From Diadema antillarum (taxonomy: Eukaryota): a stretch of 64,000 bases of DNA. Positions 4,102 to 64,000 of the stretch are shown here, piece by piece. The position numbers and the translations under genes are program-made. How positions within the stretch are numbered: position 1 is the stretch's first letter; each line of letters opens with the position of its first letter. The notes beneath the pieces were generated by a model, which did no database searches, had not been told where the DNA came from, and worked only from the letters and a program-made list of their open reading frames with translations. The stretch covers positions 248,001 to 312,000 of the forward strand of contig NW_027271595.1 of NCBI RefSeq assembly GCF_040938485.1, in the 5' to 3' direction.

Positions 4102-4140
4102 TATAAATATGGCAGATTTGGACAAGTTTCTCCAGATTGC
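4102..4140 (+). promoter_or_regulatory. Core promoter of gene 1: TATA box plus Inr-like element
   Basis: TATAAATATGG at 4102 and TCCAGATT with the A 32 nt downstream; same sequence and spacing as in the other paralogs. Confidence 0.7.
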
Positions 4141-4292
4141 TCAAGAAGAGCACAACTTGACCTACCATCCCAGGAAGAGCACAAGAAGTTATCAACACTC
4201 AATCTCTGCGAGAAAGATTGATGTACAGAAGACCGTTTTGAAGAAACTTCCCTACTACTTCTACTGCACAACAGGCCAACAAAGCTACCACA

Positions 4293-4551
4293 ATGCGAGT
4301 TTGCACGTACGCAGTACTTGCGCTGATAGCCCTCCTTGTCCCCGCTACCCTCGGGGTCCCGATCGGCAGCGGCGTACTACAAAGAGACGCCAATCCGCAA
4401 AAAGATGAACCAATGGTAAGCGCCTTTTCTCCCATACTCTTTGCTTTTCTTTGGGGAGTGGCAAATATTCAGACGGACTAGCTGTGTTCAGGACAGGGTG
4501 ATCCCGACATTTCCTGTATAGATTCTAGAATCGAAGATATGAAGGACCGTT

Positions 4552-4597
<46 letters not shown>

Positions 4598-7500
4598 TGT
4601 GTCTGTGTGTCATTATTCTCCTGCTATCTAATCACTTCTTTTCATAGGAATGTTCATTCTTGTAAGGCTGCCATTGCCATCGATAGTTATAGGGGTTGTT
4701 TTGTTTGTCAATAATGTGTTGAAACACGCCAACAAAATACGAAAATAAAAATTTATTCATGTGGCATACCATGATTCATTGTCGACAGGAAACCCCTCCA
4801 CCTAAGAAAGAAGTGGATCTCTCCGTCTCCGAAGAGAAGCCGGTGTCATCCCACCAGGAGCCCAAAGATGAAGAAAATACTCCAGGATCTTTTCAGGGAG
4901 ACATGATGTTGACTGACGAACAGTTGAGGGAAGTCATGGAGGCTATCGATGAAGAGAAAGCTGGTCGCAAGAAGAGGAAGGCTGTATCGAACACTTTGAC
5001 CCGCTGGAATCAGAACATCGTGCCTTACGTCATCTCAGCTGCTTCAAGTAAGTCTTTCAAAATGGCGCTTAAAATCATACGAACAGTTTTGCAACTACGC
5101 ATATATTTACGTCTTACCAAATACATTGCCTTGGAATTAGCTAAGATAACAGGACTGTAGTGCAGATATTGTTTCTGTTGTCATTTGCGTTGGAGGGGTC
5201 AAATGTCTTTAACTATAAACATCGGCAATTTGAGACCAGAACCTTACAATAAACACCTGAATTACTCCTGAAACAAATTCTATGAACACAAAAACAATGA
5301 ACAAGCTTTTTCTTTTTTTACTCGAAAACGAAAGTATAAAACACTCTACCAAAACACTTATACATGAACAAAAAATGGGATGTTAATTTCACTCATAGCC
5401 TACTATTTATAGAATGATTTTCTGTTTATGCTAATAAACATGTATAGGTATGTAACTATACTAGTCTAGTACTTACAGATGAAATATTTCCTCAATTCTA
5501 TTCTTTTAGTTTCTCCCGTTAAACTTTTTTTTTTCGTTTGTCACTTTGATCTCATCTAAGATTTTCATTCCGAGTGAAATGGCTTATACTCTATAGCTAC
5601 TATACTTCAAATTACTTCAACATTTTTGTGTTCATCTATTTCAATTTCAATTCATTTTATTCCAACAACGCAATAAGATAGAGCATATCTATACAGTGAA
5701 AGTATGCTAGAAGTCACTAAAATCAGGACACATTAATAATGGATGCTTTTGTTTTAGGGGGTGACACGAGTGTGATCCGTTCTGCCATGGACCACTGGGA
5801 ACAGCACACCTGTTTGAGATTCGAACCTCGAACCTCCCAGCACGCCCGTCAACTCGGTCACGGTACCTACCTGAACTTCATCAGGGACGGTGGGTGCTGG
5901 TCCTATGTCGGAAGGGTGTTTTCGTCTTCACAAGACGTGTCCATCGGCAATGGGTGCGCTTATGTGAGTACACTTTGTTCACTTTCTTGAGAGAGAGAGA
6001 GAGAAAAAAAAGTACTTAAGTTTCATTTGTATAGCAGATTGGCCATTGAACAATGTTGTTTATCGAAATCTAAATCTAACTTAACGGAGGTGATAGACAA
6101 TAGACGCTAGTTTAGTGAGATGCAGCCAGTAGAAGTGAAAATGTTCTTAACATATCTGTTTTGACACAAACAATAGCTGTGAATGATCCATGCGTACATG
6201 TATAATGTGATAAATCGTAAGCTTCCTCTCATTTTATGATTGTCAACAACAGCTCGGCATCGTCGCCCACGAGATCGGACACGCCATCGGTTTTCATCAC
6301 GAACAGTCTCGCCCTGACAGGGACGACTACATCAGAGTCCACTTCGAAAACATCGAACGCGGATTGGAAGGCAACTTTGAGAAATATTCCTGGAGCGAAA
6401 TAACAACCAACAACGTCGAATACGACATCGGATCCCTCATGCACTATGGATCTCATGTGAGTGTTTTTGTCTGTACATTGTTAAAGCAAGTATTAAAAAA
6501 AAAACTCATTTCGGCTACTTGATATTCACTTCAAAATCACATTTTGCGCGACGAATCAATGAACAGGATATTTCATGAAAAGAGAAACGACAAGTCCTGT
6601 TTTAGATAGCGATTATGGGATTGGAACCTTTGCTGAACTTGAATCACTTTCAGATCAAATCTATGCAAACTAAAACTTAAAAACGCCCTTGCTCTTCTTC
6701 AAAGACAATATTAATGGTTAGGTAAATAATTCAACTATATAATACATGCTTGTGTATTTATGCATTCATTTATAGACACATTAGTAATTTAGGCCTACTT
6801 TCAAATTCAACATGTCTTAACAAAATGTGATCGTATAGGTGAGTGTGGGAGATGAAGAACTTCGCAAACAAAATACGCAAGCAAGCGCCTTGTATTGTAG
6901 TTAGGAGCAGCAACCTCCCTGATGTCAGTAAATGTTTATCTTGTACATACCATAAATATCTTATTTCTATCTGATTTTGATTTGATTTGATTGATCGCTT
7001 CTCAAATAGGGTTTCTCCCGCAATGGCCAGCCAACCATCACTACCATCGACCCGTTGCAGATGAGTCGCCTTGGAAACCGGGATTTCCTAAGCTTCGCTG
7101 ACATCAAACTTGCCAATCTCATCTACAACTGCAACGACGACTGTAGCAATAACCTGGCCTGCCAAAACGGCGGCTACCAGGGTCCCAACTGTGATTGCGT
7201 GTGTCCTCCAGGATTCAGCGGAGACCTGTGTGAGAACGATGACGGCCCGACGGAGCCCGAAGGATGTGTCTACAGACTGACCGATTCCGAGGGAGAGATC
7301 ATGTCACCAAACTATCCAAGCAACTATGACAATGAACAAAGTTGCCAGTACATGATCGAGGTAAAGCATCTCGAAATAACCGATTCCTTTTGCACTAATC
7401 TTGTTTCCAATACGAATATTTGGCCCTGTGATTTTTGTGGTTTTTTATGTGTAGATAATATCAACTATGTGCCGCTCATGTTAACCGTTGCCATGTTTCA

Positions 7501-8512
7501 ATTTTGATGTTATCATTTTATTACATGTCTCTACAGTGATCATTAGATATAAAAACTAGATCAAGACTGTAAAAAATTGAATTCACAATATTTTCATCCG
7601 TACACTTATTTTTCCAGGGAGCTCCAGGTTCTACGATCACACTCACCTTCGTCGACATGGACATCGAGCCTCACCGTACCTGCGCCTATGACTCCGTGGA
7701 GGTCCGCACTGGAGATGTTAGCTTACCCGGACAGAGGTTCTGTGGTGCTAACCTACCAGGTGATCAGGTGTCTACCGGGAACCAGCTACTGGTTTCCTTC
7801 ACCTCTGACTACAGCGTGACAGGGCGTGGCTTCAAGGCTACTTACGTCATCAACGGTGGCACCGTCACCAGCAGCCCTGTTGTTAGCACCACCAGCCCTG
7901 TTGTTAGTACCACCGACAGTCTTGAGGAGTTCGTGGGTACTTGTGGGGGAGACTTCACCGGGAACAGTGGGACGATGGCCTCTCCAAACTACCCAGACAA
8001 CTATGACAATAACTTGGAGTGCGTCTACACCATCGAGGTCGATTCTGGTCGTCGAGTCGCGCTCAGCTTCCACGATTTGCTGATTGAGGATCAGAGGAGA
8101 TGCGGCTGGGACTCTCTTGTGGTGGACCTTGGAGAAGGGATCAAGGTGCCTATGAAGTGAGTATCCAACATCTCGGGATCTATCGAAATATCTAACACTT
8201 TCGATATTGACATCAAATTGTCATGACAATACGATTCATGTATAAAGGTATATGATGAACATACTGCTTGACAGTTTTGTATATAGAACTAATTTAAAGA
8301 CATCAATATTTTGTAAGTCACATTGTAATATTGCACTCAGATATGTATGTAACGTTTGCTTCTTGATCGATTACGTTTTCAGGTTGTGTGGAGGTGACTA
8401 TCCAGCCGGTTACTTGATTTCACTCGACAACAAAATGGAGCTGACTCTGAAGACCGATAGGAGTGCGACGGAAAAAGGCTTCGCAGCAATCTACCGCGCC
8501 ATCGACCTGTAA
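4293..8512 (+). CDS. SPAN/BP10-like: Gene 1: BP10/SpAN-type astacin metalloprotease, 7 exons, 603 aa
   Basis: join(4293..4415,4789..5047,5758..5963,6253..6456,7010..7360,7618..8156,8383..8512) = 1812 nt, all introns GT-AG with consistent phases. Signal peptide MRVCTYAVLALIALL, prodomain FQGDM, furin site RKKR, zinc motif [19 protein letters not shown], Met-turn SLMHYG, EGF (CQNGGY...[12 protein letters not shown]), two CUB domains separated by a Thr/Ser-rich linker. This architecture is that of sea urchin BP10/SpAN. Confidence 0.95.
4554..4610. repeat. (TG)n microsatellite in intron 1 of gene 1
   Basis: Direct reading of the sequence. Confidence 0.95.
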
Positions 8513-27215: not shown

Positions 27216-27899
27216 ATTAGGCAACAAAATTCACGACAGTGGAATAAATCAGGGAGGTGAGCATGAAAATTTTGATCTCATCAGGTTAACGCATCGCTTA
27301 CGCTAACAGACATCCAAAAACGAGCGAACTCACGCTGGAAATTCTGCAAGGGATCTTTTTTTTTTTTTGCCGCTTTTTCAGTCGATAGATCTAAGTCTGA
27401 CATTATAGATTTGATTTAAACTGTCTTTGTTAATTTTGGTTTTTGGTAGGAAGAGACATGATTCCTGAAAATATCTGCATCAGAGAATGTCTGTAGGAAG
27501 TTCAAATCTGTCACAATCTCAACAAATACTTTAAGGATTCATAATAGTGTCGATCGGTCGATTAAAGATGCCACCAAAAGATATGACTATGCCCCCTTAC
27601 GCGCTGGGCTGGTGTTAACTTTTATCTCCATGTCTTGATGTACCTTTGTAGTAATCTTGCCAAGGTTTTCAAGTTTTCACTTGATATTTTCCATAACCCT
27701 CAGGATTTCCTTTATTTTCGGACAAATAACATCCCTCTTTGGTGTATAAATATGAGTTTTATATCTGCTATATACAAACAAATCATTCTATTTTTCTTTT
27801 TACATCATAAACTTTTACATTTGTTCAAGAGTTGTAGTTTATATCCGTCTTCTTTGAAACGGCAAAAGGAGGAATACCGATTGTCGTTTCTACCACGGA

Positions 27900-28470
27900 A
27901 CAGAGCACCGAAACCGGAAACACAGAAGCAGTTTGTGCTCGTATTTTTCAGATTCCTTTCGATGAACAGCTTTTCAGATATAACAGTTTCTTCTGCGTCA
28001 TTAACTGAGAACACATGAAACAAAATTAATGTCCTACCTACGTCACTGCGGCGACGTGAAGCGCTGGCGTGTTTGTTCCCGCACGTCCCCTAACCACGTA
28101 AAATGCGGGCAACCAATGGGTGCTTAACCCACTATTCAAGGGGGCTACGGTTCAACAGTCTCCATCCCACGACACGCGTTTTAACACGAGTTTAACGCCG
28201 AAGAAGAAAAGAACTTTTAGTAAAAGAGCAATTCTTGTCTCGATTGTCACGTAAGACCTCTGATGGACAATAGACGCACATAGAAAGGGGAGGATCTGAA
28301 GTCAAAGAAGCATTAGTTTAGTAAGGCGTTATTAAGTGGCACTAATCTAAGACCCGTCCTCGTAAGCCTTCAGTAATGACCCTCATGCACCTACGCACTC
28401 ACGAGGTGGGAAAACCTTTGTTTCAGCCCAAGAACAGAAACAACTTACCCTTATTGACGACGTGCAAAGC
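27900..28470. promoter_or_regulatory. Conserved noncoding block B upstream of gene 2
   Basis: Aligns with 58260-58860; shared ACCGGAAAC, AACAGCTTTTCAGATA, CCTACGTCACTGCGGCGACG and CAAGGGGGCYACGGTTCAACAGT. Confidence 0.6.
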
Positions 28471-46500: not shown

Positions 46501-48924
46501 ATTTGAATATGAGACAATTCTTAAGCAAATAATTTTCACACAACAATAAATATATAATGTACTCTAAAATGAATCCCACAAGGATTGGAACAATCATCCC
46601 CCAGCATTCCCATTGATAAGTTACTAGCCAATCTCCTTTAAAGAGGGTCCGGAGTCTAAATTGCCCACGTTTTCTCTTCATTGTTGATATCGTACAGGTG
46701 TCAGAACTTACTAGATGAAGATGAGATGACGTAAGGCACGATGTTCTGAGTCCAGCGGGTCAGCGTATTCGATACTGCCTTCCTTTTCTCTCGGCCATAC
46801 TTCTCCGTGAAGATAGCCTCTTCGATTTCTTGAGCCTGTTCTGGCGTTAGTATCATGTCTCCTTCGAACGAGCCAGGAGTGTTGTCTTCGTCCTTCGGTT
46901 CCTCATGCTGTTCAACCGGCTTCTCGAAGGATACGCTAAGAGACTTCTCAGAGGAAAAGCGTGACAGAGGGAGAGGGAGATATATAGAGATAAAAAGTTG
47001 GGGGAGAGAAAGGAGACAGGGCGATAGAGGGAGAGATAGAGGGGAGAGAGNNNNNNNNNNNNNNNNNNNNNNNNNNNNNNNNNNNNNNNNNNNNNNNNNN
47101 NNNNNNNNNNNNNNNNNNNNNNNNNNNNNNNNNNNNNNNNNNNNNNNNNNNNNNNNNNNNNNNNNNNNNNNNNNNNNNNNNNNNNNNNNNNNNNNNNNNN
47201 NNNCAGGTAAAAGGGAAGTGAAAATGTAGCCCAGAAAAAAAAAATCTGGATGCGCGGGATAAAATTTATCAGAGCACCATGTGCACTCATGTTTTTTTTT
47301 TTTTTTAAGGTGGAACATAATTTGGAGCTATAGCAGCTTCCACACTCGCGACTTGTTTGAGCTATTAACTAGTCCTCACTATAGTACGTGTGTTTTAATT
47401 AATACACGATGAACGTTGTTGACTTGTATGCCATAGTGAATCCATTTACAACATTTAGATGTTTGTCAATTCACATCACAATGCATTCTTCATTGAAATG
47501 ATCTATATGGAGTATGTATATTGCATTGATAATTTATCTGGTGATTCTTCTACAAGAGAACATATCCGAAGAGGTATATAGGTCAAGTAGCTGTAAGCAC
47601 ACAAGTAAAAGAGCCAACAACGAAACACACATGTTTATGTACATAAAATTTCTCATACTACAACATGACACCAACTATAAACAATAGCAACGATATGACA
47701 GGGAATGAACAATATATGGAAGTCAGATTCAAGCAAATTGAACTATTTCTACTTGTTGATAACACCAATAGAAATTGGAGAGCATGTAAACAACGCCGTT
47801 GATTCAATTTTTAAGGCGTAGGGGATTCCACGGCTTTTAAGACACTTAACAGGTTGAGAGAGAAAATTAAGAAATGATTAGGGGTGTCTGACAAGTTTAA
47901 TTTCATCTTATTATTCCAGAGGGATAAAATCAATTTAAGGGCTTGTAGTTACGTGTGGTGAAAGTCCCTTCAGCATATTAGAAAAAAAAAACAAGTGGGA
48001 GAGAAAATGCAAAAATATGCACTTACACACACAAACAAAATGTATGACACGTATAGTGAAAATTGCTATTTTCCTTTTTTGTTTGTTTGTTGAAATCGAT
48101 CTGTAGAAATCATTAAAAACATTTTACAGGCATTTGAAACGCTACTAGAGTCTTCAGTGTGAAGTGTCTCTTGGCGTTGGTCATAGTGGCGTTGCACGTG
48201 ACGTAAATTTTCGTCCATGTGCAGTCACTGATAATTAGGACTTTGACAGTCTCTAATGCTGCCGATTATTGCTCTCTTTCAAATGTACGTTTTCTGGTCT
48301 TGGACATTACCTTTGCCAACTTTCTAGTGTCAACACGAAGGGTTTCTTAAAACTCAACGGAAATTGTAATTTTCTACTCTGGGAATGCTTGAAGATAATT
48401 ATGTGTCGTTTTGATGATATTTCTGCATGATTGCAGACTAATTTTCGGAATCATATATGATACAATATCATACTCACAGGTAAAGCAATCATTCAAAACC
48501 AAAGCACGCGGAAATAAAGACAGCCGTGCTAATCAGGTCGGAGGGAGATGGAGGGTAATATCAATAAAAGCAAAACAACGAAATAAAACTCGAGCAAATA
48601 GTGTGACAGTTTTTTTTAATAACAGTGTATTGTTAGTATTAATGATGATGATAATAAAAACAACAAGAAAAATATTATTATTACAACTATCATAGTATTA
48701 TTATTATCATTATCATTAGCATTATTACTATAATTATAATTATCATTATTATTATCATCATAGTTATAGTTATTACATTGGCACAGCGTACATACCACTG
48801 GTTTGTCTTCAAGGAGCTTCAAGTCGCGGGCAATCTTGTCCAGTAAGTCGTTAGCAGCAGGTGCACAAAGTAGGCCGGGAACGAACAGGGCTAGCAACAA
48901 CGATGACACCACTGAAACCGTCAT
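39417..48924 (-). CDS. SPAN/BP10-like: Gene 3: BP10/SpAN-type astacin metalloprotease, 7 exons, about 590 aa
   Basis: complement(join(39417..39546,40678..41192,42582..42935,43835..44038,44432..44637,46712..46946?,48796..48924)). Motifs [34 protein letters not shown]. The last exon ([17 protein letters not shown]...RAVDV*) is absent from the ORF track and was found by hand. The exon 2 acceptor is uncertain. Confidence 0.88.
44907..45073. mobile_element. Small MITE with GGCCC(T)GTTGCATAAAAC TIRs (PIF/Harbinger-like), in intron 2 of gene 3
   Basis: GGCCCTGTTGCATAAAAC at the left, GTTTTATGCAACGGGCC at the right, CAG near both flanks, internal TTACCG/CGGTAA repeats. Confidence 0.7.
46288..46637. 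mobile_element. Foldback MITE with TTAA target site duplication, in intron 2 of gene 3
   Basis: TTAA (46284-46287) AGGGGATGGCTAGTAAC ... GTTACTAGCCAATCTCCT TTAA (46638-46641); arms of about 150 bp. Confidence 0.88.
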
Positions 48925-49074: not shown

Positions 49075-50689
49075 TCTTCGAGCCAGCAAAGAGAAACCAT
49101 AAAAGCAACCTTAACCCGACCAAGTTAAGATGAAGAACACAATTGACAATCTTCTTTCAATAATCTTCTCTTCTTTTTGTTGGTTAGTTTGGTTGTTTGT
49201 TGTTTTAGTCATGTTGAATCCGAGTGGATAAGCGTTTAAGACCTGCTCGTAGTTTAATACAATGAGAACAGCTCTTGGGTATTAGACAAGAAATCTTCGG
49301 GGTTGACAATGTAAGAATATAAGAAGTGAAAAATCACTTCATCAGACCCTTTCTCTCTTGCAAGAAAGACCCCACCCTTTCAAACGGTAAGATTCGAGGA
49401 AAGTAGGTAATTGTTGATAAGTTGTTAAGCACCTTACGAGTAACCTTTGTTTCTTCTGGTCTGAGCGGAGACATTTACGTGGCTGGTTAATTACAGTTCT
49501 GTATAGAACGTACAAGGTTAGGTTATTTGTGAAGCGTTCGAGCGTCAAGAATCACTGCCCTATAATACAAAAGAAAGACACTCTTAACCATGTCTTACAA
49601 CCTACGCCTTGTATTCAGAAAGTCCATTTGAGGTGTTTTCTCTATGTGAGATTTTGACGCTATTATCGCCTCAGACATTGAAGACTGAAAGGGTTCGTTT
49701 CTTCTCACAAGAAGAGTATTACCCACCCTGAAACTAATTAGATTACTGATTGATATTTTTTTCGCCCACTAGTACTCAATCTCTGACGCACGAATCAGTA
49801 TAAGCGTCTGGGAGTAGACTGCTCATTTAGATTTGCTTGAGCACTATACTTGTAGTAAATGAATAATAACGATATAATAAATCAGTATTGTTCAGCGAAG
49901 AATCTATGTGTCTTAATTGGCCCTTATCTTGCGCTGTAAGAGCTCCTCAAATGCTATTTTTCCTAGTAATCTATTAATTTGTGAAATATTTTAAATAAAC
50001 ATTAGGTGAATAGAAAAAAAATAGACATATAAGTCTATATGTTGTGCTAATTTTCGTCAGCAGAATAAATTGATAAGAAAATAACTACTATAAAAGAAAT
50101 CCTATAGAATTTTTGATATGGGGAAACAATTTAATTCAGGAGGTGTTGTGAATAGTCTGACAAACCTAACGGAGACAGGTTTATTACCAGATATATTTAC
50201 CAGCAGTTAAAGAATTTGTTCATAGGGCAATTTCAACTCACGGGGGCTCCATAGTATAGGCCTATATCTATAGGTCTAACCCTTACAAGACCACCTTGCA
50301 TACAGTTCATTCCACATCATATCAAATTACAGCAAAATAAATGTATTATTACATTGACATCTGGATTTTAATCGATCAAAGATACTGTGATAAATCATAA
50401 TATAATCAAATATACTGTATGCACTATCTCTTTTATTCATTTATTATTTTCAACTATGCAAGACAGGAAATATGAATAACTCCCTGTTAAAGAAAAAGTT
50501 TCGAGTTTTGATCCGATGGCTTCTATAATGACTGAGATTTTCTGATATCCAGTGGTGATCTTACCTAGAGGCTGCCAAAGGAAAAAAAAGTCACCTGACT
50601 TTATGTATACTGTGTTTTACAGGGAATCTACAATACGAAAATAATATAACCATTGGTTCGAGGTTCATTTATTCCATTATTGTATTAAA

Positions 50690-51240
50690 AAGGAGTTAAA
50701 CCACTTAATGTTTTGTAGACTATGAGTCATCAGTATCTTCAATTCAACTCCTTGGCGAATGGGCAACCAGGTTTTGATTCTCCAGAAGTGGTGTAACACG
50801 GCCGAATCTTGGGAGGTTAGAAATAAATCTTGCATATCATGTGTTTTGATCCCGTTCCAACTTCACAATCTGCGTGTCTGATAATCCAAACAATAAATCA
50901 TTACACCACTCTAGTTTACAAAACTATGATGCATCCATGAATAACAGTTTTCATATTGTTTTAATCGACACATTTACGAATGCATCTCGGGTTACAGATC
51001 TACGATATACCAAATTGCACTCGTAATTTGTGATTTCATATTCAGGCGAGTATCAACGAACACTCCAAATCATTATTTGATGGCATTATCAATGTTTCCT
51101 ACTAATAAAACATTTGATCTAGATTTAGAAATATGATATGAATGACCAACAGGAAGGGTTGTTTTCTTGTCATTGAACATTAATTGTTCCGTAACAGACA
51201 TTTTCAAATGTACTTAACGCATGTACGATGTAATTATGAT
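50690..51240 (-). mobile_element. Decayed L2-type LINE, ORF2 C-terminal fragment
   Basis: Frameshifted minus-strand peptides LMFNDKKT, GVFVDTRLNMKSQI, KLEWCNDLLFGLSDTQIVKLERDQN and VTPLL...WLPIRQGVELKILM match the known L2 ORF2 motifs LN.dKT, LGVi.D..L, LDYCN.LL.GL...KLQ..QN and HWLP. May extend to about 51430. Confidence 0.75.
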
Positions 51241-51639
51241 GGAATTACAAATACAATACTATTTGTCAAAAATGTAAGGAGCTCTGTTAGTTTGTGTCTT
51301 TGTGAAATTTGAAATACTTTTCAAGTAGGCATATTATTGTGAGGAACAGTTTTGCAGAAAGAAGACGAAAATATCGTTTTGGATATAATGCTTAAATAAC
51401 AAATGAGTGCTGTCATGTCTGACTGTATATCCAAGGATCACATGTTATGTAGCCGCAAAAAAAAAAAATGACAGTGTGTGGTAGTGCTTACGAACGTTTT
51501 CACCACCATGCCGCGTCAAAAATATGTAGCTTGAAGGTGAAAGGGCTATAGAATCTTTTACATCTTCCACATCTTCTACATCTTCCAAAGAGTAGTTTGA
51601 TTCTGCGGTGCCATATATGGATGGAGAAGCCGATGTTTG

Positions 51640-51870
51640 TTATTTCAAAGGTTCGTTAAGCTGAAAATGAAAAAGGATTCATTAATCCGAAAGTTTGAGG
51701 CGTTATTCGGATCAGAGTTCGTTATTCCAAAGGTTCGTTAATCCGACAATGAAATATGATAGGGTTTATAATTCGAAAATAAAAATAAGATGCATACATA
51801 CTAACGAACCCTTCGGAATAACGAACCTTTCTCTTATTTTAAATTAACGAACCTTCGGAACAACGATTCT
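51640..51870. repeat. Cluster of AAGGTTCGTTA / TAACGAACCTT direct and inverted submotifs
   Basis: Repeated motif in forward orientation on the left and reverse on the right; likely a MITE remnant. Confidence 0.6.
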
Positions 51871-52189
51871 TCGCAAATTTAGCACACAACATCGGACAGA
51901 AACCTTTCAAAAGGCAAAATATTAGATTAATCTAAATAAAATAGAGAACAATCAGTGAGGAAACGGAGCAATCATAAGATACAAATGTGATGAGTGAAAC
52001 ATAATTATGATGCAATGAAACATCTTCGGTCAGTGTATCTACGTAACGCTCAAATGCTTCAAATGACATGGACAGAGTTATCGATCTTTCAATCTTGTTT
52101 CACAGTATATAGTGACTCCATTCTGCGTACCTACTACGATTGCAGTGATTTATGATTGGATTTGGGTTTAGCTTCAGTTGATAATAGCC

Positions 52190-54220
52190 AGATCATGTAT
52201 TGTACCTAGTGTCACGAGGACTAAAGAGTTCACTGATCCACGGAAGACCAGTAGTCAGCCCGCCAGCTCGGAAAGGAGAATGAGTTAATTGTTTGGACCT
52301 GCGAACATTTAGCAATAAGGGTGTAGAGTGTCCACAGGTCGTTTGTAGAGAACATACAATTAACCTGCAAAACATTTCTTACAGAACAATTTTGGATAAA
52401 AAGCAATATATCACATCAGTAATGCTTTCCAGTTTTCCCCCAGACTATGTTACAATCATCAAGATGAGACTGTATTATAGATTAATGTAATAACAACAAA
52501 GCACGGAAATCAAACATATCACGTCTCTACAAAAGATATTGACGCCTTTTCATTTCATTTCATTTCATTTCATTTATTTCATTTCATTTCATGTCATTTC
52601 ATTTCATTTATTTCATTTCATTTCATTTTGTTTATTTCCATTTTCATAATTGGTTTAAAATTTTTTGCATAAAAAAAAACTGTGTGTGAATAAGAAGAAA
52701 CGTGAACTTATATTTCTTGGTATAAACACCATCTCGTCCGAAGAAACCTGAACCAAATACCAAATACCAGGATTATGTAAGTAATCAAAGTGAGCGTTCC
52801 ATTGCAGATTCTCATATATCACTGCATGCTCCCAGATATGTACATGCTGTTCTCTGAATTACGTATTTGTCAATATGTACGTTCATAATCCTGGTATTTG
52901 GTTCGTTTCTTCAGGCGAGATGGTGTTTATACCAAGAAATATAAGTTCACGTTTCTTTTTATTCACACACAGTTTTTATCCGATAACGAGTCCGATAGCG
53001 AAGCAAGGTCTTCTTAAAATGTTTAACAACGTCACCGGGTTTCTTTGCAGAATAAGATGAACAGGTGTCATTTGCGTAAAGTGACAAGTCACTATACTTA
53101 ACAACAGCATGCAATTCATTCACATATAAAGAAAAGATTACAGGTCAAATCAGGGATCACTGTCGTACACCAACATCTCATAATTTGCTTATCTGAAACA
53201 AAACCACTCACACATGTACATCGTGTCCGGGTCGAAAGGTTATTTCAAAATCGTACAGTATTTCCATTAGAATCATGTATTTTTAGCTTTTGAGTCAATA
53301 TACAGTGATTTACAGCGTCAAAAGCCTTTTTAAAATCAATCATTACTACCTCAACAATATTTCCAGAGGCAATACCATCAGACCAGTACTCTGTTACATT
53401 AGCAATGCATCTTTGGAGGTGGAGTGCTTCGGATGAAAGCCAAACTGTTTATCTGTCTGTCTGTAAGATTGTGTGTTTTCAATCAGAGAAGTCTGTAGTT
53501 GGTCATAAGCAACTTTCTCTACGGTCTTAGCAAAAAACAGGGTAACAGAAATAGGTCTATGATTGCAGATATCATCTCTGCTGCCTTCCTTGTAAGCAGG
53601 TGTAACACGAGCCTCCTTCCATTCATCAGGTATTGTGCCCTTGTGTATTGATTGTTTTATTAAGTTGGCGGGGCTGCAGCTGTCAAGGATGCAACTAGTT
53701 CAGAAGTTTGACGGGTATGTTGACCCGTGGCTAGATCATAGGTAGTCACTTTAACAAATCGCACACGTTCTTGTATAGCTTTAAATGTTTTGAGGGGGAA
53801 TGTGGTCATGGTGGTGTAGCCTTTGCTGTAAAAAAAAAAGAATGCATTTATTTCATTGATTAAACGCTCAATTTTCACTCTCAATTTTTCCCTATGTTAA
53901 CCAAATAGCGATTAAACAAATCAGCTAAATATCTACCACTAACACTTTTGTCATTAACATTGATTGAAGTGATTTGTGAGTCTGTTTTCTCTCCCGGTAT
54001 CACATACCTCAAAGATTGCCAAATTTCTCTTGTACAATTTCCACCTGTTTCAATCTTAAGCGAGATTAACTAACTTGGCGTATTCTGAAAGTGACATTAT
54101 TTCTAACCTTGTGATGTTCCACATCCGAAGACAGCTTCGCTCTTTTCAACTATCTTGTGAGCTTGTCCCTATATCACAAATAATATAGTTCGAATGGCAC
54201 TTGCCATCCACCGAGATTGT
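52190..54220 (-). mobile_element. Decayed CR1/L2/Crack-group LINE ORF2 (reverse transcriptase), interrupted by a MITE
   Basis: Minus-strand peptides HKVRNNVT, IWQSL...LADLFNRYLVNIG, GTIPDEWKEARVTPAYK...NHRPIS, QFGFHPKHST, IDFKKAFDAVNH, LYVNE...YANDT (decayed YADDT), SHLDDCNIVWG and ELF...RYNT appear in canonical RT order with stops and frameshifts. Confidence 0.9.
52674..52978. mobile_element. Foldback MITE nested in the LINE
   Basis: AAAAACTGTGTGTGAATAA...ACCAGGATTATG at the left and its reverse complement at 52874-52978; a (CATTT)n tract lies just to the left. Confidence 0.85.
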
Positions 54221-54244
54221 CTTTTTACTCTCTCTCTCTCTGTT

Positions 54245-54301
<57 letters not shown>

Positions 54302-54554
54302 GTATGTATGTATATGTATAAGTAATAAGGTCACAGTAGAGGAATGCATTGAATGCCAATGGCCTTGATTTTATTTTAAGAATTTTCGGGGGCCTCCCCC
54401 TTCGTCAGGGATGACAGTGCGAATGAATTTTCAGTGATATTAATGATATATACATATATCATTCCGATTTCTTTATCGGTAATATCGAAATTCCTTTCTC
54501 ATCTTTTTTTCCTTAATTGTACATTTACTGTTGAAAATCTGTAACAAAATGCCC

Positions 54555-55260
54555 CCCCCCCCCACACACACACAAACACACACATTGCAAGCGACAAGTT
54601 TTCTACTGCGCAAGACAAAGCGATAATAACTCAGTACACATATCATGAATTATGGTAACATCCATGTAAAAGGACTTTAATTCATTTCAACTCGTTTCCA
54701 GCAGTCCACAGACGGACAAGTTATCATACACATCTTCGTCTTCGTATGCATGATATTAGTACATTAATAAATTACTAAAACTGATGCAGCTTTTCATCGT
54801 GAGGTCTTCTGCTGTTCTGCGTCTGATATGTGTGCTCTTCAGTCTCCTTAATTCTTTCTTCTATTCGAAGTCTACGCTGTCTCCTCTTGAACAATGTCAG
54901 TTGACTTCGTCGTGTCTCCCTTCTAGATAGATGTATCACAATTTGCTCTTGAAGAGTGATCTGAAGAAAACTGTTCAACCTAGCCATTTTCATACCTCGT
55001 CCCGATCAAGAGGCATAGTAGCCAATGTCTTCAGACCCTAACGTCTCCAGCCACAGCACTTGTCTCAAAGGCTATGTAGTCACTTATCTCTGTCTGGTGC
55101 GGTTCAAAAGAGAAGAAGCATTCCCAATCCTCTTTCATGAGATTTAGATGAAAGGTCTAAAAGGGTATTGATTCGGATTTACGCCGTGGTGTTGAACAAC
55201 AATAAACAATAAACGCACGGGGGAAAGAACACCCATTCTTTGACTGGGCTCAGATTTGTC
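54555..55260 (-). pseudogene. Hollowed BP10/SpAN paralog of gene 2 type: promoter, 5'UTR and ATG joined to the 3'UTR end
   Basis: 55260-54781 aligns with 23530-23066 (promoter, 5'UTR, ATG at 54797). The ATG is followed by an extra A (ATGAAAAGCTGCATC versus ATGAAAGCTGCATT) and gives a 13-codon ORF. 54730-54620 aligns with gene 2 3'UTR/flank 18430-18310. TATA is altered to TATGAAAATGG. Confidence 0.85.
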
Positions 55261-55689
55261 CTTATAAGTTATTGTACCATTGCACAAATTTACAGATAAC
55301 GGAGAGCTAGTAATGTAGTGTATCTTTAGCTATTTTTGTTTCCAGAATCGAGTGAGTGCCACATGTTATTTTGAAAATGGTAAATGAAGTGACGATTTAT
55401 TATCCTTACCCTTCTGTTTTTGCAATTGTGAATACACGTGCATTAATTTGATCAAACAGTAATTGCGAATACTATTTGTTGACTGATTATAATAACTGAC
55501 TGGATATAACAATGAAGGAAAAAAAAATCAGATCTGCCAAATTCTACCAGAATTGGGTAGGATAAGTAACCTAGGAATGTAATGATATTCATACACTTGT
55601 AGGGTGGCGATCTATGAAAAAATTAAGTATGTTATTAAAACAACAGTTCGACTTTGTATTTGGTCTCAAACTCTCAATCGTATTCGTCT

Positions 55690-56110
55690 TATTGGCCAAA
55701 TGATGACAAGGCTTGGTTCCCCCCTTTACCGTTTTTCATTGGACCTTTATCCGTCAAACCTGCGCTATGTCTAGACCTGGGTACACTAATTAAGTCAAGA
55801 CAAGGCTGCCGATCGTGAAGTGTCGGCCCTAAGCACTATAGGTCTCGGCTTAAATGAGGGCAATTGATTCTGTCTTCACGCGCAGTTTAACATATTATAA
55901 AAATAGCGATAGTACAAGGAGTCGTGTATCCTGATTTACCAGTTAATCCAGTGCTGATCGAGCCGAAACACAATGAGGGCACAGATTTCATGAATGAATA
56001 TACCACAACCACGCCCTGCGTCATCGTGCATTGAAGCGTGGTATCGCCAGGCGTTCTTATTCCTGTCCATATAAGGAGAATTCACTTCTTCTTCAGACTC
56101 GGTAAAAAAA
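55690..56110. promoter_or_regulatory. Conserved noncoding block A', with CArG box CCATATAAGG at 56067-56076
   Basis: Homologous to 25560-25990. Confidence 0.6.
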
Positions 56111-57343
56111 GCACAGACCTCGCTGTAGTAGAACAAATACAATACGCACAACATCAAGTGTTATTTGTGATTTGTACTTTGAAGATGATATGAATATGAG
56201 ACAACATAACATTATATCAGCACTTCCTATAGAAAACTTGCACATAAAAGGTCTTAAACTTATTCTAAAACATTTTCGGTTTTTAAATTATATACGATAT
56301 ATCATAATTTATACTCTATGCCGGTAAAACATTGCAATAATGTTTATTTGGAACATTCAGTTACAAATTCTGAATTCAATTCAATCTATTTAGTTTACTT
56401 TCCAGTTAAGGAAATGTGTATGTATAAATGTATGCATGTCATTTACTATACAGTGTTGATTCTATGCTACAAATTATCTGATTGTAGTGACACACAGTAT
56501 GTATCAATAGAGGTAGGCTAGATACGAGACACTATAGATCTTGTTTTTTTTAATTTTTTTTGTACAGTGTTTGCACACATGGCAAATGTACACACACATT
56601 TGTGTGGGCTTATCCATGAATCAAAAATGAATATTGTTTGTGCTTTTATGATATTTGTTTTTTTTCCTTTAATTGTTATTTACTTTATGTCAGTAGAAAT
56701 ATTCCAGTTTTGTTTATTTGGAGCGTCCATTTACAAACAATGTTTGATTTAATTCAATTCGTATAATTCACTTTCCANNNNNNNNNNNNNNNNNNNNNNN
56801 NNNNNNNNNNNNNNNNNNNNNNNNNNNNNNNNNNNNNNNNNNNNNNNNNNNNNNNNNNNNNNNNNNNNNNNNNNNNNNNNNNNNNNNNNNNNNNNNNNNN
56901 NNNNNNTTTATTCTGCTAGAATTATCTGATTGTAAAGACATACTTAGGTAGGCTGTACACGAGATACAAACACATCGTGTGGTTTTTTCCATGTATTGTA
57001 TGTATGGGTGTTTGTGTATACACGTGTGTATGGGGGAGGGGAGGGGCTTACTCATGCATGGAACTGAAAAATTGTTTGTGTTTTGATGGTATGTGCTTTT
57101 GTGCATGAACACAATGCGCATGTGTGTGGGTGTGATGCACGATTAAAAAGAATGCCCATGGACCAAAGAGCAGCCGAAATATTTTTTAGTGAATCGAACT
57201 AAGAAATTAAAACACGTTGCAAAAATATAAACACACTGAGTGACTGAAAAGATGTTAACTATTATGATCATCATTCCAATACTGTTACACTCCAACACAC
57301 ATCATTGATAAAGCCGATTGATTATCTATACATGATAGGTACA

Positions 57344-57388
<45 letters not shown>

Positions 57389-58259
57389 CACTATTTTGAA
57401 AATTGTACTTTTAGTTGCCTTTACTTTTTTTCCCTGCTAGATTTGGAAATGTTTGATTAGGAGACACATAAAACGGAACATCCTCATTTTATTGAATATT
57501 ATAATTCATACTATACTTATTACAACTATACGTAATACACAGATGCGCCATTCTGATGCAAACTGAATTTGCTACAGACACGAACATTATAACTCATCAG
57601 CTGGAATTTACAATCGTAGCATGCATTTAGACCATAAATAATGTTAAGTTTTATCGGCAGACACACACCGTTTACATTAACAAACACCAAGAATAATCAA
57701 CTCACATTGGTGCAAAGAATGCCGCTCATCGTGTTATTTAAGCCCATAAAATTACTGTATTAGACCTTTGCGAATTTCGGCCAATATGCCCGGAGACACA
57801 CAATATATCCCTGAACGTATTTGATATAGATGTCTAGAAAGCTAAAGTCTGTCACAGTCTCATCAAAGGTTGTTAGAAAAGCATGGGTCTTGGTCGATCA
57901 AAGTTTTATACGACCACTAAAAGATATGCGCTCTAGGCCGAGGTTCCCTCTCGAAGTCTATGTCATTATTGTTGTATTTTCAAGTTGTTCCGATTGTCTT
58001 TTTTTTTCGCTATAGTTCCTGTGCATTTCCTTTACTCTCAGGTAGAATAATTCCTCTTTCATGTTATGTGAGTTCCGTGCCTTTAATACATGTTATAAGC
58101 AAATTCTTCATGTGTTTTTGTTTGGTTTTATTTTGTTTTGTTTTGTTTTGTTTTGTTTTGTTTGTTTTTGTTTTGTTTTTGTTTTGTTTGTTTTTTTACT
58201 TTAGAACACATAGTCTGTTAAAACGGCGAATGGGAAATACTCATTTTACATTATTACCA

Positions 58260-58860
58260 TGGAACAACTCACACACCACGACCGGAAACAGTGATGTAGT
58301 TGCGAGTTTGTTATTTGTTCGTTTCCTTCCATTCAACAGCTTTTCAGATACCATAGTTTCTTCCGCGTCATTAACTAAGAACTTAATGAACAAAGCGAAT
58401 GTCCTACGTCACTGCGGCGACGGAGCACACCGCCAATGTGGTAAAGAGCATTATTGTTCCAGTGACCAGTGACTTGGTAACCAAGTAATTAGAAGGCAAC
58501 CCATGGGTGCTCAATAGACAATGCAAGGGGGCCACGGTTCAACAGTTTTCATCTCACGCATTTGTCATTTGTAAATAGTTACGCTGATTACACCAAAGAT
58601 GAAAGAAACATTTAGAAAAGCACGATGCTTGACTCAAACATGACGTAAAGCCTGTGATTAACAGCAGACGTACCCGAAGGATTTGGAGTAAAAGAAAAGC
58701 ATGAGTTTATTTATAGTTGTTGATGAGGGAACTTTCATTGTTCTTTATCCAAGACCATTCAATCAATAGCATTGACCTCCTGCACGTCTATACAGGGGGC
58801 GGGGGGGGGGGGACGTTTGTTTCAGCTCGAGAACAGTAACATCTTCCCTCTTTGACTAAG
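58260..58860. promoter_or_regulatory. Conserved noncoding block B'
   Basis: Homologous to 27900-28470. Confidence 0.6.
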
Positions 58861-60123
58861 TTAAACAATCTGCATTACACAACGGAGGAGGTGGCATGTT
58901 TCCATGCAAGTTTCCATTCACTTTTCAGAATAAAAAAGTAGAATGCTGAAAAGTGAAAATTTTATTCAACTTTTATTGAATTACTTAAGACTATATAGAG
59001 TCCAAAACTCTATGATCTTTGAAGGTGATGAACCGTAAACCCAATATCCGTTATTTACTCGTTATATATTAGAAATGTCGATAATGATAATTCTAATTAC
59101 GGTTATGACATAATAATGAAATTATAGTAGTGCAAATAATCGTAACACTTAACTCTGATATTTTTTAAAGATAAATCTTTGTCTTAATTATATCGCTTTG
59201 CTGCTGGGCGTATTATACATTGCATCATACCCCCTTTATGCGTTCATATGCCCGCAATACGAATATGTAATTGTAATTTTTTGTCTTGTTCACTATGTGG
59301 ACTACATGTAAAAAAAAAAAAACCAGTGAAAAGAGAATTTCCTTTATGGACAATAAAGCAATTCATTCATTCATTCATACAGACGGATTTTCGACGCTTT
59401 ATTATACCATACTCACTCAGTCCAAGATGATGGACATTTCAAATACGTCATACAGAGTATGCCTGCTTGTCCGGCTGTGATATGAACGTCATTTCCGTGA
59501 TTTTCGTCTCAGAACACTTATGAAAATTTTATTATTTCATATAGGGTATTTGTTAGATGAAAAAAAAAACACCCTAAATTCAACATCATTCGTATAGGGT
59601 ATATGGCCCCATTTTTTTTCTCTCTCTCTTCTCTAAAACAACAACAACAACATCATTCGTAGCTAGCTCCCCGGTAAGATCGCCGCTCGCATGATACACG
59701 AAAATAAATAATAATGTAGGCAGTGTAAATATGATATGCTTACTCCACTTACTTTGCATGAACATGATAGAATTGTATCATCATTCATCATTATCAGCGT
59801 CAGTATTGGTATGCAAAATGAGATTGTGAACATAAGGACAGATAGAGAGGAACTTCAACCTTCAAGCTTGCCTTTTATTCTCAATTTTCTCGCCCAAACA
59901 AAGACATTCAGAAAGTAGCTGTCAATTCTTAGACAATTTTTTTTTAAAGTAATATCACACTATCCACCTACGTAACCTAACAACAGGGAAACATTCGATT
60001 CATGTTGGACAAAAACAACTTCCGTTCTTTCCTAGTTCTCAAGATTGTTACAACAATTTCTTTTCAGGTCCTTTAGTATTAACTATTGAATCACATTTAT
60101 ACAACAGAGAAAAATTCAAAATA

Positions 60124-60313
60124 CACTATAAAAACGCAAATGTTGAATCAACATTTAAAAGGGCCGAGGAGTGACAGCATTTTTTGAAGTGTTGCATCCA
60201 ACTTTTAAAATAACATTTTAAATGTTGAATCTAGCAGGAAAACCAACACTTTGAAAATGTTGTCACTCCTCGGCCCTTTTAAATGCTAATTCAACATTTG
60301 GGTTTTTAGAGTG
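60124..60313. mobile_element. Small foldback element with CAC...GTG ends flanked by TA
   Basis: TA-CACTATAAAAACGCAAATGTTGAAT...TTTAAAAGGGCCGAGGAGTGACA and its reverse complement; arms of about 70 bp. Confidence 0.85.
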
Positions 60314-61933
60314 TACTACACGCTGAAATGAGTCGTGGTACCCAATTCCAAACCCCAAATTCAAGTGTTCATTCTCACACTTACTATAGTATAAGATGTA
60401 TCATAGTAACTGAGATTATTGGAACCATAAAAAGCCGGATCCAACCGTATAGCAAGGCGATGTACAATGAGGAACCTTCAAATTACCAAAACCCAGAATG
60501 AATCTGGATTTTTCGCCACCATAGGTCATGCGAAACAACTCGTTATGGTTATAGGACCCTGGACTCGGAAAAACCGTATTCTCGTACAAAGCAGCATTCT
60601 ATAAACGTGATACAACTAAACGACGGACGTAAATCTTTGTGAGATATCCTCTTCCCGCACAAAACTTCCGAAGGTATTGCTGCCAATGATTTTAGTCATA
60701 TTTTTGTTCTTTTGCGATTGTTTAAATTAACTGCATGTTTGGCTGGATTTCCTTTGCTTTTTAAATGCATACAGGAGTTGCGGAGATTTCCACTAAAACA
60801 GATAAACTGATTAAGTGATTACCTGAAATAAGAGTTTGCTTTGTTTGTGTTTTATTGCATAAAATGTGCATATATGATAACACCATCGAATTATAGTGCT
60901 GACACAAAGACATCCCGTTTCCGCAATAGTAATACTAGTAATCAATATCTATCTACCTATGTTGAAAGACAGAAAATACAAATAGCTAAACTTGAAGAAA
61001 CAATATCTTATTTTCTTTTCTAAGATGATTGTCAAATGTCAAAAAAAAAAAACCTGCCTCGCAGTGGGGAACTTTACTTGTGCTTCTCCAGAGGAACCTA
61101 CTCTATGTAAGACATTTCGATTTTCTTATGCTCCTCCCACAAAAATGTATATACCTGTATCTGTAGCTGTATTTTTCACCACCACCCCCCCCCCGAATCA
61201 TTATATCATCTTGAACGTGACGTACTACCAGGATCTGCTCATTGAGGCGACTGCATTCGTTTATAATTAGTTTGTCTTACTTGTTTTAACTGTATAACGT
61301 CAAGTGTTATTTATTAACTTGAATGCAATCAGTTTGTGTCACATCCGGTAAAAGTGAAAATAAATGTGAATTTGATCAGTGTTTGTTAAATCGACAGGTT
61401 AAAAAAAAAGCGCAATGGCAAAAACAACAGTGACATGAAACATAATATCAAAGCTATATATTCATGACATGGTTGTGACGAGCTTGCGCGTTCGTGCGTT
61501 GCGCTGTTTACGAGTCCCCATTATGTACCAGAGTTAAGTGCAAACACAGGGGGCGCCTTATCTATTACCACAGGCGGATGCTGATACGGTAAACTAGTTC
61601 TAGACAATGTGGACCGCGAACGGAAATGTCATCTATAAATATATTATTTAAAGAGAACAGCAGAGTCATGTTGATTTATTCTTTGAAAGAAACGATGACT
61701 TCGTTGCCTAAAGGTCGCAATAAAAATCACTTCAGCGAAACGGTCGCCCTCACCCCCTTGAAGTCGGAATAGTTAAGATCATCAGTCAAGCGTGTTTGAA
61801 AAAAAAATGTCATTGTCAGTGACATTTGAAAAAAAAAACAGAAGAGGGGTAGTGACGACATTCACTTAGTTGTGCAACATGCAAACAGTAGTCACCAGTA
61901 TTTGTTGTGGTACATGGACCGTGTGGGGGAAGA

Positions 61934-61970
61934 TATAAATATGGCTGGACGGACAAGTTTTCTTCAGATC
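61934..61970 (+). promoter_or_regulatory. Core promoter of gene 4
   Basis: TATAAATATGG at 61934 and TTCAGATC with the A at 61966. Confidence 0.7.
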
Positions 61971-62103
61971 GCTCATCAAGAGCAAACTGCGACACATCAA
62001 TCTAGAAGGGAGAAACGACGGAGTCAACTGTCAGCGTTGAAGAGAAGACAACATATATTTCGAATCGAAGAAATTATCAGTCAAGTTAGTATCAGATCTC
62101 AAG

Positions 62104-63928
62104 ATGAAAGCTGCATTAGTATTAGTGGTGGTTGCTCTGCTCGTCCCAGGTCTTCTCGCCGGACCGGTCGGCAGCGGCGTCCTCGACAGACTCGCTCGAG
62201 ACGTGCCTCCTCAGAAGGATGAGCCGGTGGTAAGCACAGTTAAATATTCACGAGTTCAAGTTCAGTTTCTTCTAGTTATTTCTTTCGCTCAGATTCTATA
62301 ACACCGCCGATATTGCAGCACTTTTGATACAATGGTTTGCTAAACTCCGCTCTCTAACATCCTAGTCCACCCCCATTCTTTGTGCTTTTCAGGAAACCCC
62401 TCCCCCTAAGAAAGAAGTGGATCTCTCCATCTCCGAAGAGAAGCCAGTGGCATCCCACCAGGAGCCCAAAGATGAAGAAAATACTCCAGGAACTTTTCAG
62501 GGAGACATGAAGATGACTGATGAGCAGTTGAGGGAAGTCATGGAGGCCATCGATGAAGAGAAAGCTGGTCGCAAGAAGAGGAAGGCTGTATCGAACACTT
62601 TGACCCGATGGAATCAGAACATCGTGCCTTACGAAATCTCAGCTTCATCTAGTAAGTTCTGGCAACTGTATGATATCAACAATGAAGAGAGAACGTGGGC
62701 AATTTATACTCTGGGCTCTCTTTAAGATATCATCTGTAGGTTTCGTCACCTGTAGGTCGGTAAATGTGCTGTATTTCAAGTCTTAGAGACAGGACTTTGA
62801 AGATAAAGATTCTACACAAATATACAGTAACTGGTATTCGTTGATTAAACTTTATATACTGATATTTTCATTCTTAAGGTTCATTATCTTCGTCTTGTTG
62901 ACTATATTTCAGGCAGTGATGTCAACGCGATCCACGACCACTTGATCATACTTGATAATGATCATTTATGCCTTCTTCGGCAAACAAAAACGCAAATTCT
63001 ATACCAAATGTAGTCAGAATCATTGATTGTGATTTTTTCCTGGTGTAGAGTTCTTGGTAGGCTCATTATCATGATTGTTATCATCTTGTTGATTGTATTT
63101 CAGGTAATGATGTTGATGCGATCCGGGCTGCCATGGATCACTGGGAACAGCACACCTGTTTGAGGTTCGAACCAAAAACCGCACAGCACGCCAGTCAGCT
63201 GGGACACGGAACCTATCTGAACTTTATCAAGAGCGATGGATGCTGGTCCTACGTTGGAAGATTCTCTTCATCCATCTCTTCGCCCAGAGCTCAGGATATT
63301 TCCATCGGATCTGGATGTGAATCCGTGAGTTTGCTGCTATAGCTGATTTTGTAATACACGTAACATTTTTTTTTTATTTGATGCCAAATCATTACATATC
63401 ATATGATTTCAAACAAATAATTTTCTAATCCGTAGTTCCAGAAAGGTACATCAAAAAATATAAGTATTATGTAAATATTCAAAAGATGTTAAGGTTCGGG
63501 TTCACACCCCCCCCCCCCTCACGTCCATTAGTGCGGATATTAAAAAGTGTGACGAATACAATGAGATGTTATTGCGGCAATATAACACCAGTGAAACATG
63601 TCACAATAGTAGCCCGTAGATGTAATTTCAGAATTGGTATTTTGGAAGAGTTGAAATTCGATTATGAATCATTTTTCTTCAGTTCCATTTAATAACTCCT
63701 TTCCTTTAATTCTAACAATGATAGCTCGGCGTCGTTGCCCACGAGATTGGCCACGCCATCGGTTTCCATCACGAGCAGTCTCGCCCTGACAGGGACGATT
63801 ACGTCACGGTCCATTTCGAAAACATCCGGTCTGGATTCGAAGGCAACTTTGAGAAATATTCCTGGAACCAAATAACAACCAGCAACGTTGAATACGACAT
63901 CGGATCCCTCATGCACTACGGATCTCAT
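62104..63928 (+). CDS. SPAN/BP10-like: Gene 4: BP10/SpAN-type astacin metalloprotease, exons 1-4 only (continues past the window end)
   Basis: join(62104..62229,62393..62651,63104..63324,63725..63928,...), all GT-AG. Signal peptide, [28 protein letters not shown] and SLMHYG are intact; exon 3 is 15 nt longer than in the other paralogs. Confidence 0.92.
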
Positions 63929-64000
63929 GTAAGTTTTCATGATTTCAAATCTATTAGGATATAATTGACATGTTCATTTTCTTCCCTTTCGTTTATACCC

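Follow-up and report, generated by a model that had tools for sequence, protein, structure and literature searches.

A fifth SpAN/BP10-type astacin gene emptied by internal deletion in a gene cluster of Diadema antillarum

Introduction

The blastula astacin proteases of sea urchins include SpAN of S. purpuratus, BP10 of P. lividus and proteins of Lytechinus and Diadema that are named 'SpAN-like' or 'blastula protease 10-like'. For early animal-vegetal regulation in sea urchins, the promoters of SpAN and BP10 have served as classic models. Other systems to which the locus described here can be compared are duplicated pseudogenes with an internal deletion, transcribed pseudogenes and promoter-derived long noncoding RNAs (lncRNAs), and processed pseudogenes.

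The locus belongs to a stretch of 64,000 nt of Diadema antillarum DNA, hereafter the window, in which all coordinates are given. The minus strand of positions 54555-55260 carries a relic that we name the shell. An initial annotation, made from the letters of the sequence, had described it as a hollowed-out fifth paralog of a gene cluster. That description is borne out: the landmarks of a gene follow each other in the correct order, gene 2 of the cluster is the nearest copy, and the shell is a fifth paralog that was emptied by internal deletion.

The gene cluster and its protein family

Four intact paralogs are found in the window together with the shell:

~4300 to 8512, plus strand: gene 1, intact paralog; best match D. 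antillarum P0158 (92% identity)
23082 to 19533, with the 3'UTR reaching ~18365, minus strand: gene 2, intact paralog; best match D. antillarum P0157 (90% identity)
~48920 to 39420, minus strand: gene 3, intact paralog; best match D. setosum P0161 (94% identity)
62104 to beyond the window end, plus strand: gene 4, intact paralog; best match D. antillarum P0160 (97% identity)

Pieces of the gene 2 ORF match the Pfam families Astacin and CUB. The products of genes 1-4 share a layout of signal peptide, astacin domain, EGF domain, CUB domain, threonine-rich linker and second CUB domain, and all four have the HExxH zinc site of the astacin catalytic domain along with the EGF and CUB domains. The family was named in two steps, from a search of representative proteins with a single gene exon to the full-length relative P0089, and from P0089 to named proteins; the one-exon search returned mostly giant multi-CUB proteins and P0089 was its sole useful match. 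The best matches of genes 1-4 to SpAN/BP10-type proteins of Diadema identify them as four intact paralogs. The family is thus SpAN/BP10, with the order astacin-EGF-CUB-CUB, and the shell is its fifth copy. The cluster in the window should be annotated as four intact genes and one relic, the latter receiving neither a gene nor an lncRNA label on sequence alone.

The locus L001 of a further D. antillarum assembly (see below) holds at 17610-20565 another SpAN-like gene of 521 amino acids, of the P0157 type, ~3.5 kb downstream of gene 4 and in the same orientation. The cluster therefore extends beyond the window end. About 2 kb upstream of gene 1 there is a tRNA gene at 2138-2210 on the minus strand (Rfam RF00005, 44.7 bits).

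Anatomy of the shell

Read on the minus strand from 55255 down to ~54565, the shell is organized as a miniature gene:

Upper end at 55255, ~260-300 nt, minus strand: promoter, homologous to the gene 2 promoter
55057-55255, minus strand: orphan proximal promoter module, matching the gene 2 promoter at 23326-23528 and retained in D. setosum
54994-54987, minus strand: degenerate TATA box TATGAAAA, where genes 1-4 have TATAAATA
54961-54964, minus strand: Inr-like TCAG, 32 nt downstream of the TATA box
54798-54962, minus strand: 5'UTR remnant of 165 nt, its first ~85 nt being the conserved leader found also in gene 2 and gene 4
54797-54795, minus strand: start codon ATG, followed by AAA AGC TGC ATC
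54756-54797, minus strand: mini-ORF of 13 codons and a stop (54758-54756)
54781-54784, minus strand: deletion junction, with 2 nt (CA, 54783-54782) assignable to neither side
54655-54781, minus strand: retained end of the 3'UTR, matching gene 2 from 18526 to ~18365
54681-54676, minus strand: poly(A) signal variant ATTAAA, the same in the second haplotype; gene 2 has AATAAA

These elements agree with the initial annotation, which had read from the minus strand a gene-2-like promoter and 5'UTR (54784-55255, matching gene 2 at 23070-23528), a start ATG AAA AGC TGC ATC with a one-base insertion (found at 54797 onward), an ORF of 13 codons, and ATTAAA at 54676-54681 in place of the AATAAA of gene 2. 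It had also noted that the TATA box is weakened while an Inr-like element and upstream blocks persist, as the change from TATAAATA to TATGAAAA, the TCAG and the promoter blocks confirm. Over 54994-54984 the TATA region of the shell reads TATGAAAATGG, compared to TATAAATATGG in all of genes 1-4. Transcription is predicted to start at the A at 54962, and the predicted RNA would run from there to ~54655, a length of ~307 nt.

The coding capacity of the gene is lost. After the ATG of the shell there is one extra A relative to the ATG AAA GCT GCA of gene 2, and what remains is the frame-shifted ORF of 13 codons, composed of the start codon, four frame-shifted signal-peptide codons and a continuation into 3'UTR sequence. 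None of the protein features of SpAN/BP10 (astacin catalytic domain, EGF, CUB) is encoded by the shell, and neither astacin nor CUB sequence is found anywhere in 49500-61900.

Homology to gene 2 and the deletion junction

Self-comparison of the window aligns the shell to gene 2 in two blocks. The first (54784-55255 to 23070-23528, 74% identity, E=1e-77) covers the gene 2 promoter, its 5'UTR and the first 13 nt of coding sequence. The second (54620-54726 to 18313-18424, 78%, E=2e-16) covers the end of the gene 2 3'UTR, and the homology on this side extends in total from 54781 to ~54565, corresponding to gene 2 from 18526 to ~18248. Homology collinear with a live gene thus flanks a gap that holds the coding body, as in a pseudogene with an internal deletion. 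The 5' homology stops with GCTGCAT at 54784 and the 3' homology starts at 54781, where the shell reads GTTTTAGTAATTTAT and gene 2, from 18526, reads GTTTTAGTCAATTTAT. The initial annotation had placed the 3'UTR match within about 50 bp of the start codon. The match is real; the intervening ~50 nt that precede the GTCCGTCTGTG block are, however, also gene 2 3'UTR, and the two homologies therefore meet within 2 nt.

18527-23069, minus strand: stretch of the reference gene 2 without counterpart in the shell, 4,543 bp

The missing stretch comprises all exons after codon 5, all introns and ~1 kb of the 3'UTR; the hairpin motif CCGTCTGGAACGGCTGGATAT lies in it twice (18578-18598 and 18708-18728 in gene 2). 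This agrees with the loss of roughly 4.6 kb, including all exons and both SRE-like hairpins, that had been estimated initially. No copy of CCGTCTGGAACGGCTGGATAT is found in the shell at three mismatches or fewer. A degenerate look-alike of the hairpin, CCGTCTGTGGACTGCTGGAAAC, is found just before the poly(A) signal in the shell (54695-54716) and in gene 2 (18395-18416). The CNGG-loop stem of CCGTCTGGAACGGCTGGATAT is not kept in CCGTCTGTGGACTGCTGGAAAC, which may be a decayed third copy of the 3'UTR hairpin element.

Deletion mediated by microhomology or repeats was considered on account of GATGAAA and TTTTA, which occur near both gene 2 breakpoints; neither yields the join observed. There is no long repeat at the junction and its ambiguity is limited to 0-2 nt. 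End-joining would be the simplest reading of how the deletion arose.

The junction is real DNA

Tandem paralogs are hard to assemble and N gaps are found nearby, a general caution that could invite the reading of the junction as an artefact, namely a collapse or misjoin over an intact fifth gene. The nearest gaps lie at 47051-47203 and 56778-56906. There are no N runs between 47203 and 56778, which agrees with the absence of an N gap at the junction noted initially. Contigs of public sequencing runs were aligned to 54600-55500: X1 and X2 come from separate studies of one organism (organism A) and X3 from another (organism B). X1 has two contigs (rec1, rec2) over 54632-54879 at equal depth, one identical to the window and the other with 19 substitutions and 16 gap letters. 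X2 gives a 445-nt contig (rec9) over 54632-55097, of the second type only, and X3 a contig (rec14) over 54678-54908 with 7 differences, ~97% identity. The junction is crossed by five independent contigs from three studies and two haplotypes, and no joints or loose ends are reported there among the run contigs.

The D. antillarum assembly GCA_040938485.1 (locus L001) is collinear with window 51780-64000 at ~94% and has the same junction. L001 was considered as a possible second species and this was rejected, since it carries exactly the variants of the alternative allele of the organism A runs: its 8-nt deletion at 54809, 9-nt deletion at 55014 and 2-nt insertion at 54761 are those of the second contig type. 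The window and L001 would thus correspond to two haplotypes of D. antillarum or of a very close form. Misassembly, the outcome that the initial annotation had named as fatal to its reading, is contradicted by the contigs of three studies and by L001, and we give the artefact practically no chance. Both haplotypes carry the junction and the deletion is therefore older than their split.

Organism B has a Cys-to-Tyr change at 54787 in the mini-ORF. Its contig follows the shell up to 54908, within the conserved leader, and then departs; the last 24 letters have no match in the window. The departure reflects either an additional rearrangement that the relic underwent in organism B or an artefact of the assembly graph, the run being very small.

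Size and age of the duplicated unit

The interval 54555-55260 given initially for the relic describes the body of the shell correctly; the duplicated unit is larger and includes a distal block:

58218-58856, minus strand: distal upstream block of ~600 nt, matching 27854-28458 at 67-82% identity

Within the window this block is common only to the upstream regions of the shell and gene 2, at 3.3 kb upstream of the former and 4.6 kb upstream of the latter. Its position midway between the shell and the divergent gene 4 makes it a candidate distal regulatory element of the cluster. The sequence between the alignable islands can no longer be aligned, which dates the duplication of gene 2 and the shell as old. 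The islands would represent what stayed constant during most of the time since duplication. As only promoter blocks, leader, poly(A) region and distal block are alignable, the gene from which the shell derives probably remained functional for a long time.

The other paralogs share less with the shell. The similarity of gene 4 to gene 2 and the shell begins at the TATA box and continues downstream only: its region 61734-61933 matches 23283-23528 and 54999-55255 over TATA box, leader and 5'UTR at 77-81%, and upstream there is nothing. One paralog lineage has had its proximal promoter module swapped or replaced. Genes 1 and 3 have little in common with the shell beyond the TATA box. Gene conversion was discarded as the origin of the conserved leader: among all paralogs of the window and L001, gene 2 is the closest (88%).

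Decay within D. antillarum

The order of elements in the shell (TATA-like box, TCAG at the canonical distance of 32 nt, conserved leader, ATTAAA) invites the reading of a working unit whose product would be a micropeptide or a functional, polyadenylated noncoding RNA of ~300 nt, or whose core promoter would compete with genes 3 and 4 for enhancers that they share. With the Inr-like site, the leader and a usable ATTAAA intact, transcription is possible. The TATA box argues against such a unit. It is TATAAATATGGC in 4/4 intact copies, kept even in genes 1 and 3 although their promoters are otherwise unalignable, and the shell alone has TATGAAAATGGC, with two changes that are present in both haplotypes. 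When gene 4 is used as outgroup over the core promoter and 5'UTR, the shell has 18 unique substitutions and gene 2 has 8, a difference that is not significant (p=0.08).

Comparison of the two haplotypes also speaks against a working unit. They differ in the shell by 5.2%, with four indel events in 636 nt, which is no less than in the flanks (4.8% and 1.7%), and between ATG and poly(A) signal by 12.9% plus indels. An 8-nt indel lies in the 5'UTR and a 9-nt indel just upstream of the TATA box. The mini-ORF ends differently in the two, after 13 codons in the window and after 17 in L001. Allele differences affect 8/318 positions in the blocks shared with gene 2 and 7/159 outside them, which gives these blocks no significant deficit (p=0.28). 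The leader is quieter, with 1-2 differences in 119 nt, and two differences in 119 nt could be taken in favour of a functional unit. This was dropped as a sign of constraint: in the same pair of haplotypes the live gene 4 differs by 1.5% in an intron, which matches or beats the leader of the shell, and by 3.4% in its own leader. These gene 4 values identify the quiet leader as an effect of a mosaic of haplotype ages.

The predicted ~307-nt RNA has no unusual fold (z = -0.54 relative to shuffled sequence) and no match near the cut-off of any Rfam family. These two results, and the absence of the transcribed region in D. setosum, speak against a gene for a functional noncoding RNA. A processed pseudogene was discarded too: the promoter and the distal block are retained, the exons are absent and no A-run follows the poly(A) site.

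Comparison with D. setosum

The D. setosum chromosome GCA_964275005.2 served as cross-species reference through a 26-kb locus (L002). It is collinear with window 29654-56777 at 80-89%, and hence gives a true cross-species view. At the shell the following stretch is missing:

54627-55056, minus strand: 430 nt absent in D. setosum, reaching from the core promoter through the full length of the predicted transcript to the poly(A) site

D. setosum reads GAGACAAGTG and then directly TTATCGCTTTG, the alignment being clean on both sides, and the 430-nt piece has no match in the 26-kb locus. The transcript and core promoter of the shell are consequently not a conserved feature of the genus. The contig of organism B covers part of the 430-nt piece, from which it follows that organism B is not D. 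setosum. The ~300-nt noncoding RNA or promoter decoy proposed in the initial annotation finds no support, given the absence of the unit in D. setosum, the TATA changes, the indels and the ordinary fold; we regard a working unit as very improbable.

Other features are found around the shell. Window 49600-53000 differs from L002 ~3300-6700 by 22% mismatches and ~1.5 kb of gap columns, the surroundings having 9-12%, which suggests insertions or repeat turnover. Two imperfect palindromes flank the shell in the intergenic DNA: aligned to its reverse complement, the one at 52675-52977 matches at 75% over 322 nt and the one at 60122-60315 at 80% over 197 nt; no Rfam family reaches its threshold at either.

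A conserved upstream module

The proximal module of the shell is present in both species though both lost the gene body. Divergence between the window and D. setosum is as follows:

Module of the shell (55057-55218): 4.9% (8/162 differences, 95% identity)
Live gene 3, exon 1: 3.2%
Live gene 3, leader: 5.8%
Live gene 3, proximal promoter: 6.5%
Flanks of the shell: 10.4%

The module is as conserved as the promoter of a live gene and its flanks are about twice as diverged. This runs counter to the reading of the shell as a plain relic, since neutral decay following a shared ancestral deletion would not predict such conservation. The initial annotation had held that decay at the neutral rate would reduce the shell to an ordinary deletion pseudogene; this largely describes the transcribed part and less clearly the upstream module, which is unexpectedly well kept.

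The gene could be dead and its proximal module (55057-55255, ~160-200 nt) nevertheless kept by selection as a cis-regulatory element, an enhancer or a landing site of transcription factors for gene 3 (~6 kb away) or gene 4 (~7 kb away), with core promoter and transcript dispensable. Its presence in the two species speaks for this, as do its divergence (4.9%), below that of the flanks (10.4%) and of the leader and promoter of the live gene 3 (5.8-6.5%), its identity at the 97th percentile of 160-nt windows over 9.5 kb, and the tandem ATTGTT repeats that it has in common with gene 2, which we take to be Sox-type cores of putative binding sites. The difference between module and flanks is nonetheless modest (Fisher p=0.022, uncorrected for the choice of window), and four or five other intergenic islands in the same 9.5 kb are equally conserved. 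Furthermore, the blocks in common with gene 2 contain 6/8 of the module differences, 4 of which arose in the window species, so that no special protection of the presumed binding blocks is seen. Recent, independent losses of the gene would give the same conservation through past use of the module as a promoter. We consider retention of the module by selection unlikely.

Two histories fit the comparison of the species. The ancestor may have had an intact fifth gene that each lineage deleted separately and fairly recently, so that the module was for long a live promoter. Alternatively, the shell is ancestral, D. setosum lost a further 430 nt, and the module is under selection, for example as an enhancer of genes 3/4. 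An extended reading would combine loss of the gene body, in two Diadema lineages separately or in two steps, with purifying selection on a ~160-nt module that serves the neighbouring paralogs and a core promoter that in D. antillarum still fires a short polyadenylated RNA; this combination appears somewhat less likely again than retention of the module as such. If true, a promoter would have been caught turning into an enhancer inside a tandem gene cluster. If the module is neutral, the locus documents ordinary gene death only.

The locus offers a natural experiment: of one ancestral gene, a cassette running from promoter to terminator survives in one Diadema lineage, and only the upstream module in another. 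Given the standing of the SpAN and BP10 promoters as regulatory models, an orphan module that matches a live promoter in conservation makes a cheap and well-defined candidate to ask if the promoters of dead genes are reused as enhancers.

Proposed history of the shell

We favour the hypothesis that the shell is a functionless relic, left by internal deletion, of a SpAN/BP10-type gene, and hold it with good confidence. An ancient duplication would have given rise to gene 2 and the ancestor of the shell, with the 3' end and no less than 3.3 kb of sequence upstream included in the copy. This ancestor probably worked as a gene for a long time. A single deletion of ~4.5 kb, of end-joining type, would then have brought codon 5 next to the final ~160 nt of the 3'UTR, any filler between them being no longer than 2 nt. 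Drift since the deletion would account for the two changes in the TATA box, the base inserted after the ATG and the transition from AATAAA to ATTAAA, as well as for haplotypes that stand apart by 5% and several indels. The shell is probably without a function of its own; at most, a weak, short and unstable transcript may arise as a by-product of a promoter whose decay is incomplete.

Comparison with known systems

The shell is an ordinary, fairly old pseudogene, unusual only for its neat promoter-to-terminator cassette. Its resemblance to duplicated pseudogenes with an internal deletion is extensive: it is a tandem paralog, its non-coding landmarks are collinear with those of a live copy while the coding part is lost, it has accumulated degenerative changes and it differs between related species. 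It is an extreme case in that one deletion took essentially the whole body and left a cassette of ~310 nt from promoter to terminator, and it differs also by an upstream module that is more conserved across species than typical pseudogene DNA. A processed pseudogene would likewise be short and without introns; the shell, however, keeps ~300 nt of promoter and the distal block, and lacks the exons and the A-tract of a retrocopy. With transcribed pseudogenes and promoter-derived lncRNAs it shares a plausible core promoter and a poly(A) signal, but its transcribed part is not found in the sister species and gives no structure signal. With respect to the SpAN/BP10 blastula astacin proteases, promoter, leader and first codons of the shell are homologous to those of gene 2, whereas no part of the protein is encoded: the shell is a relic of this family rather than a member.
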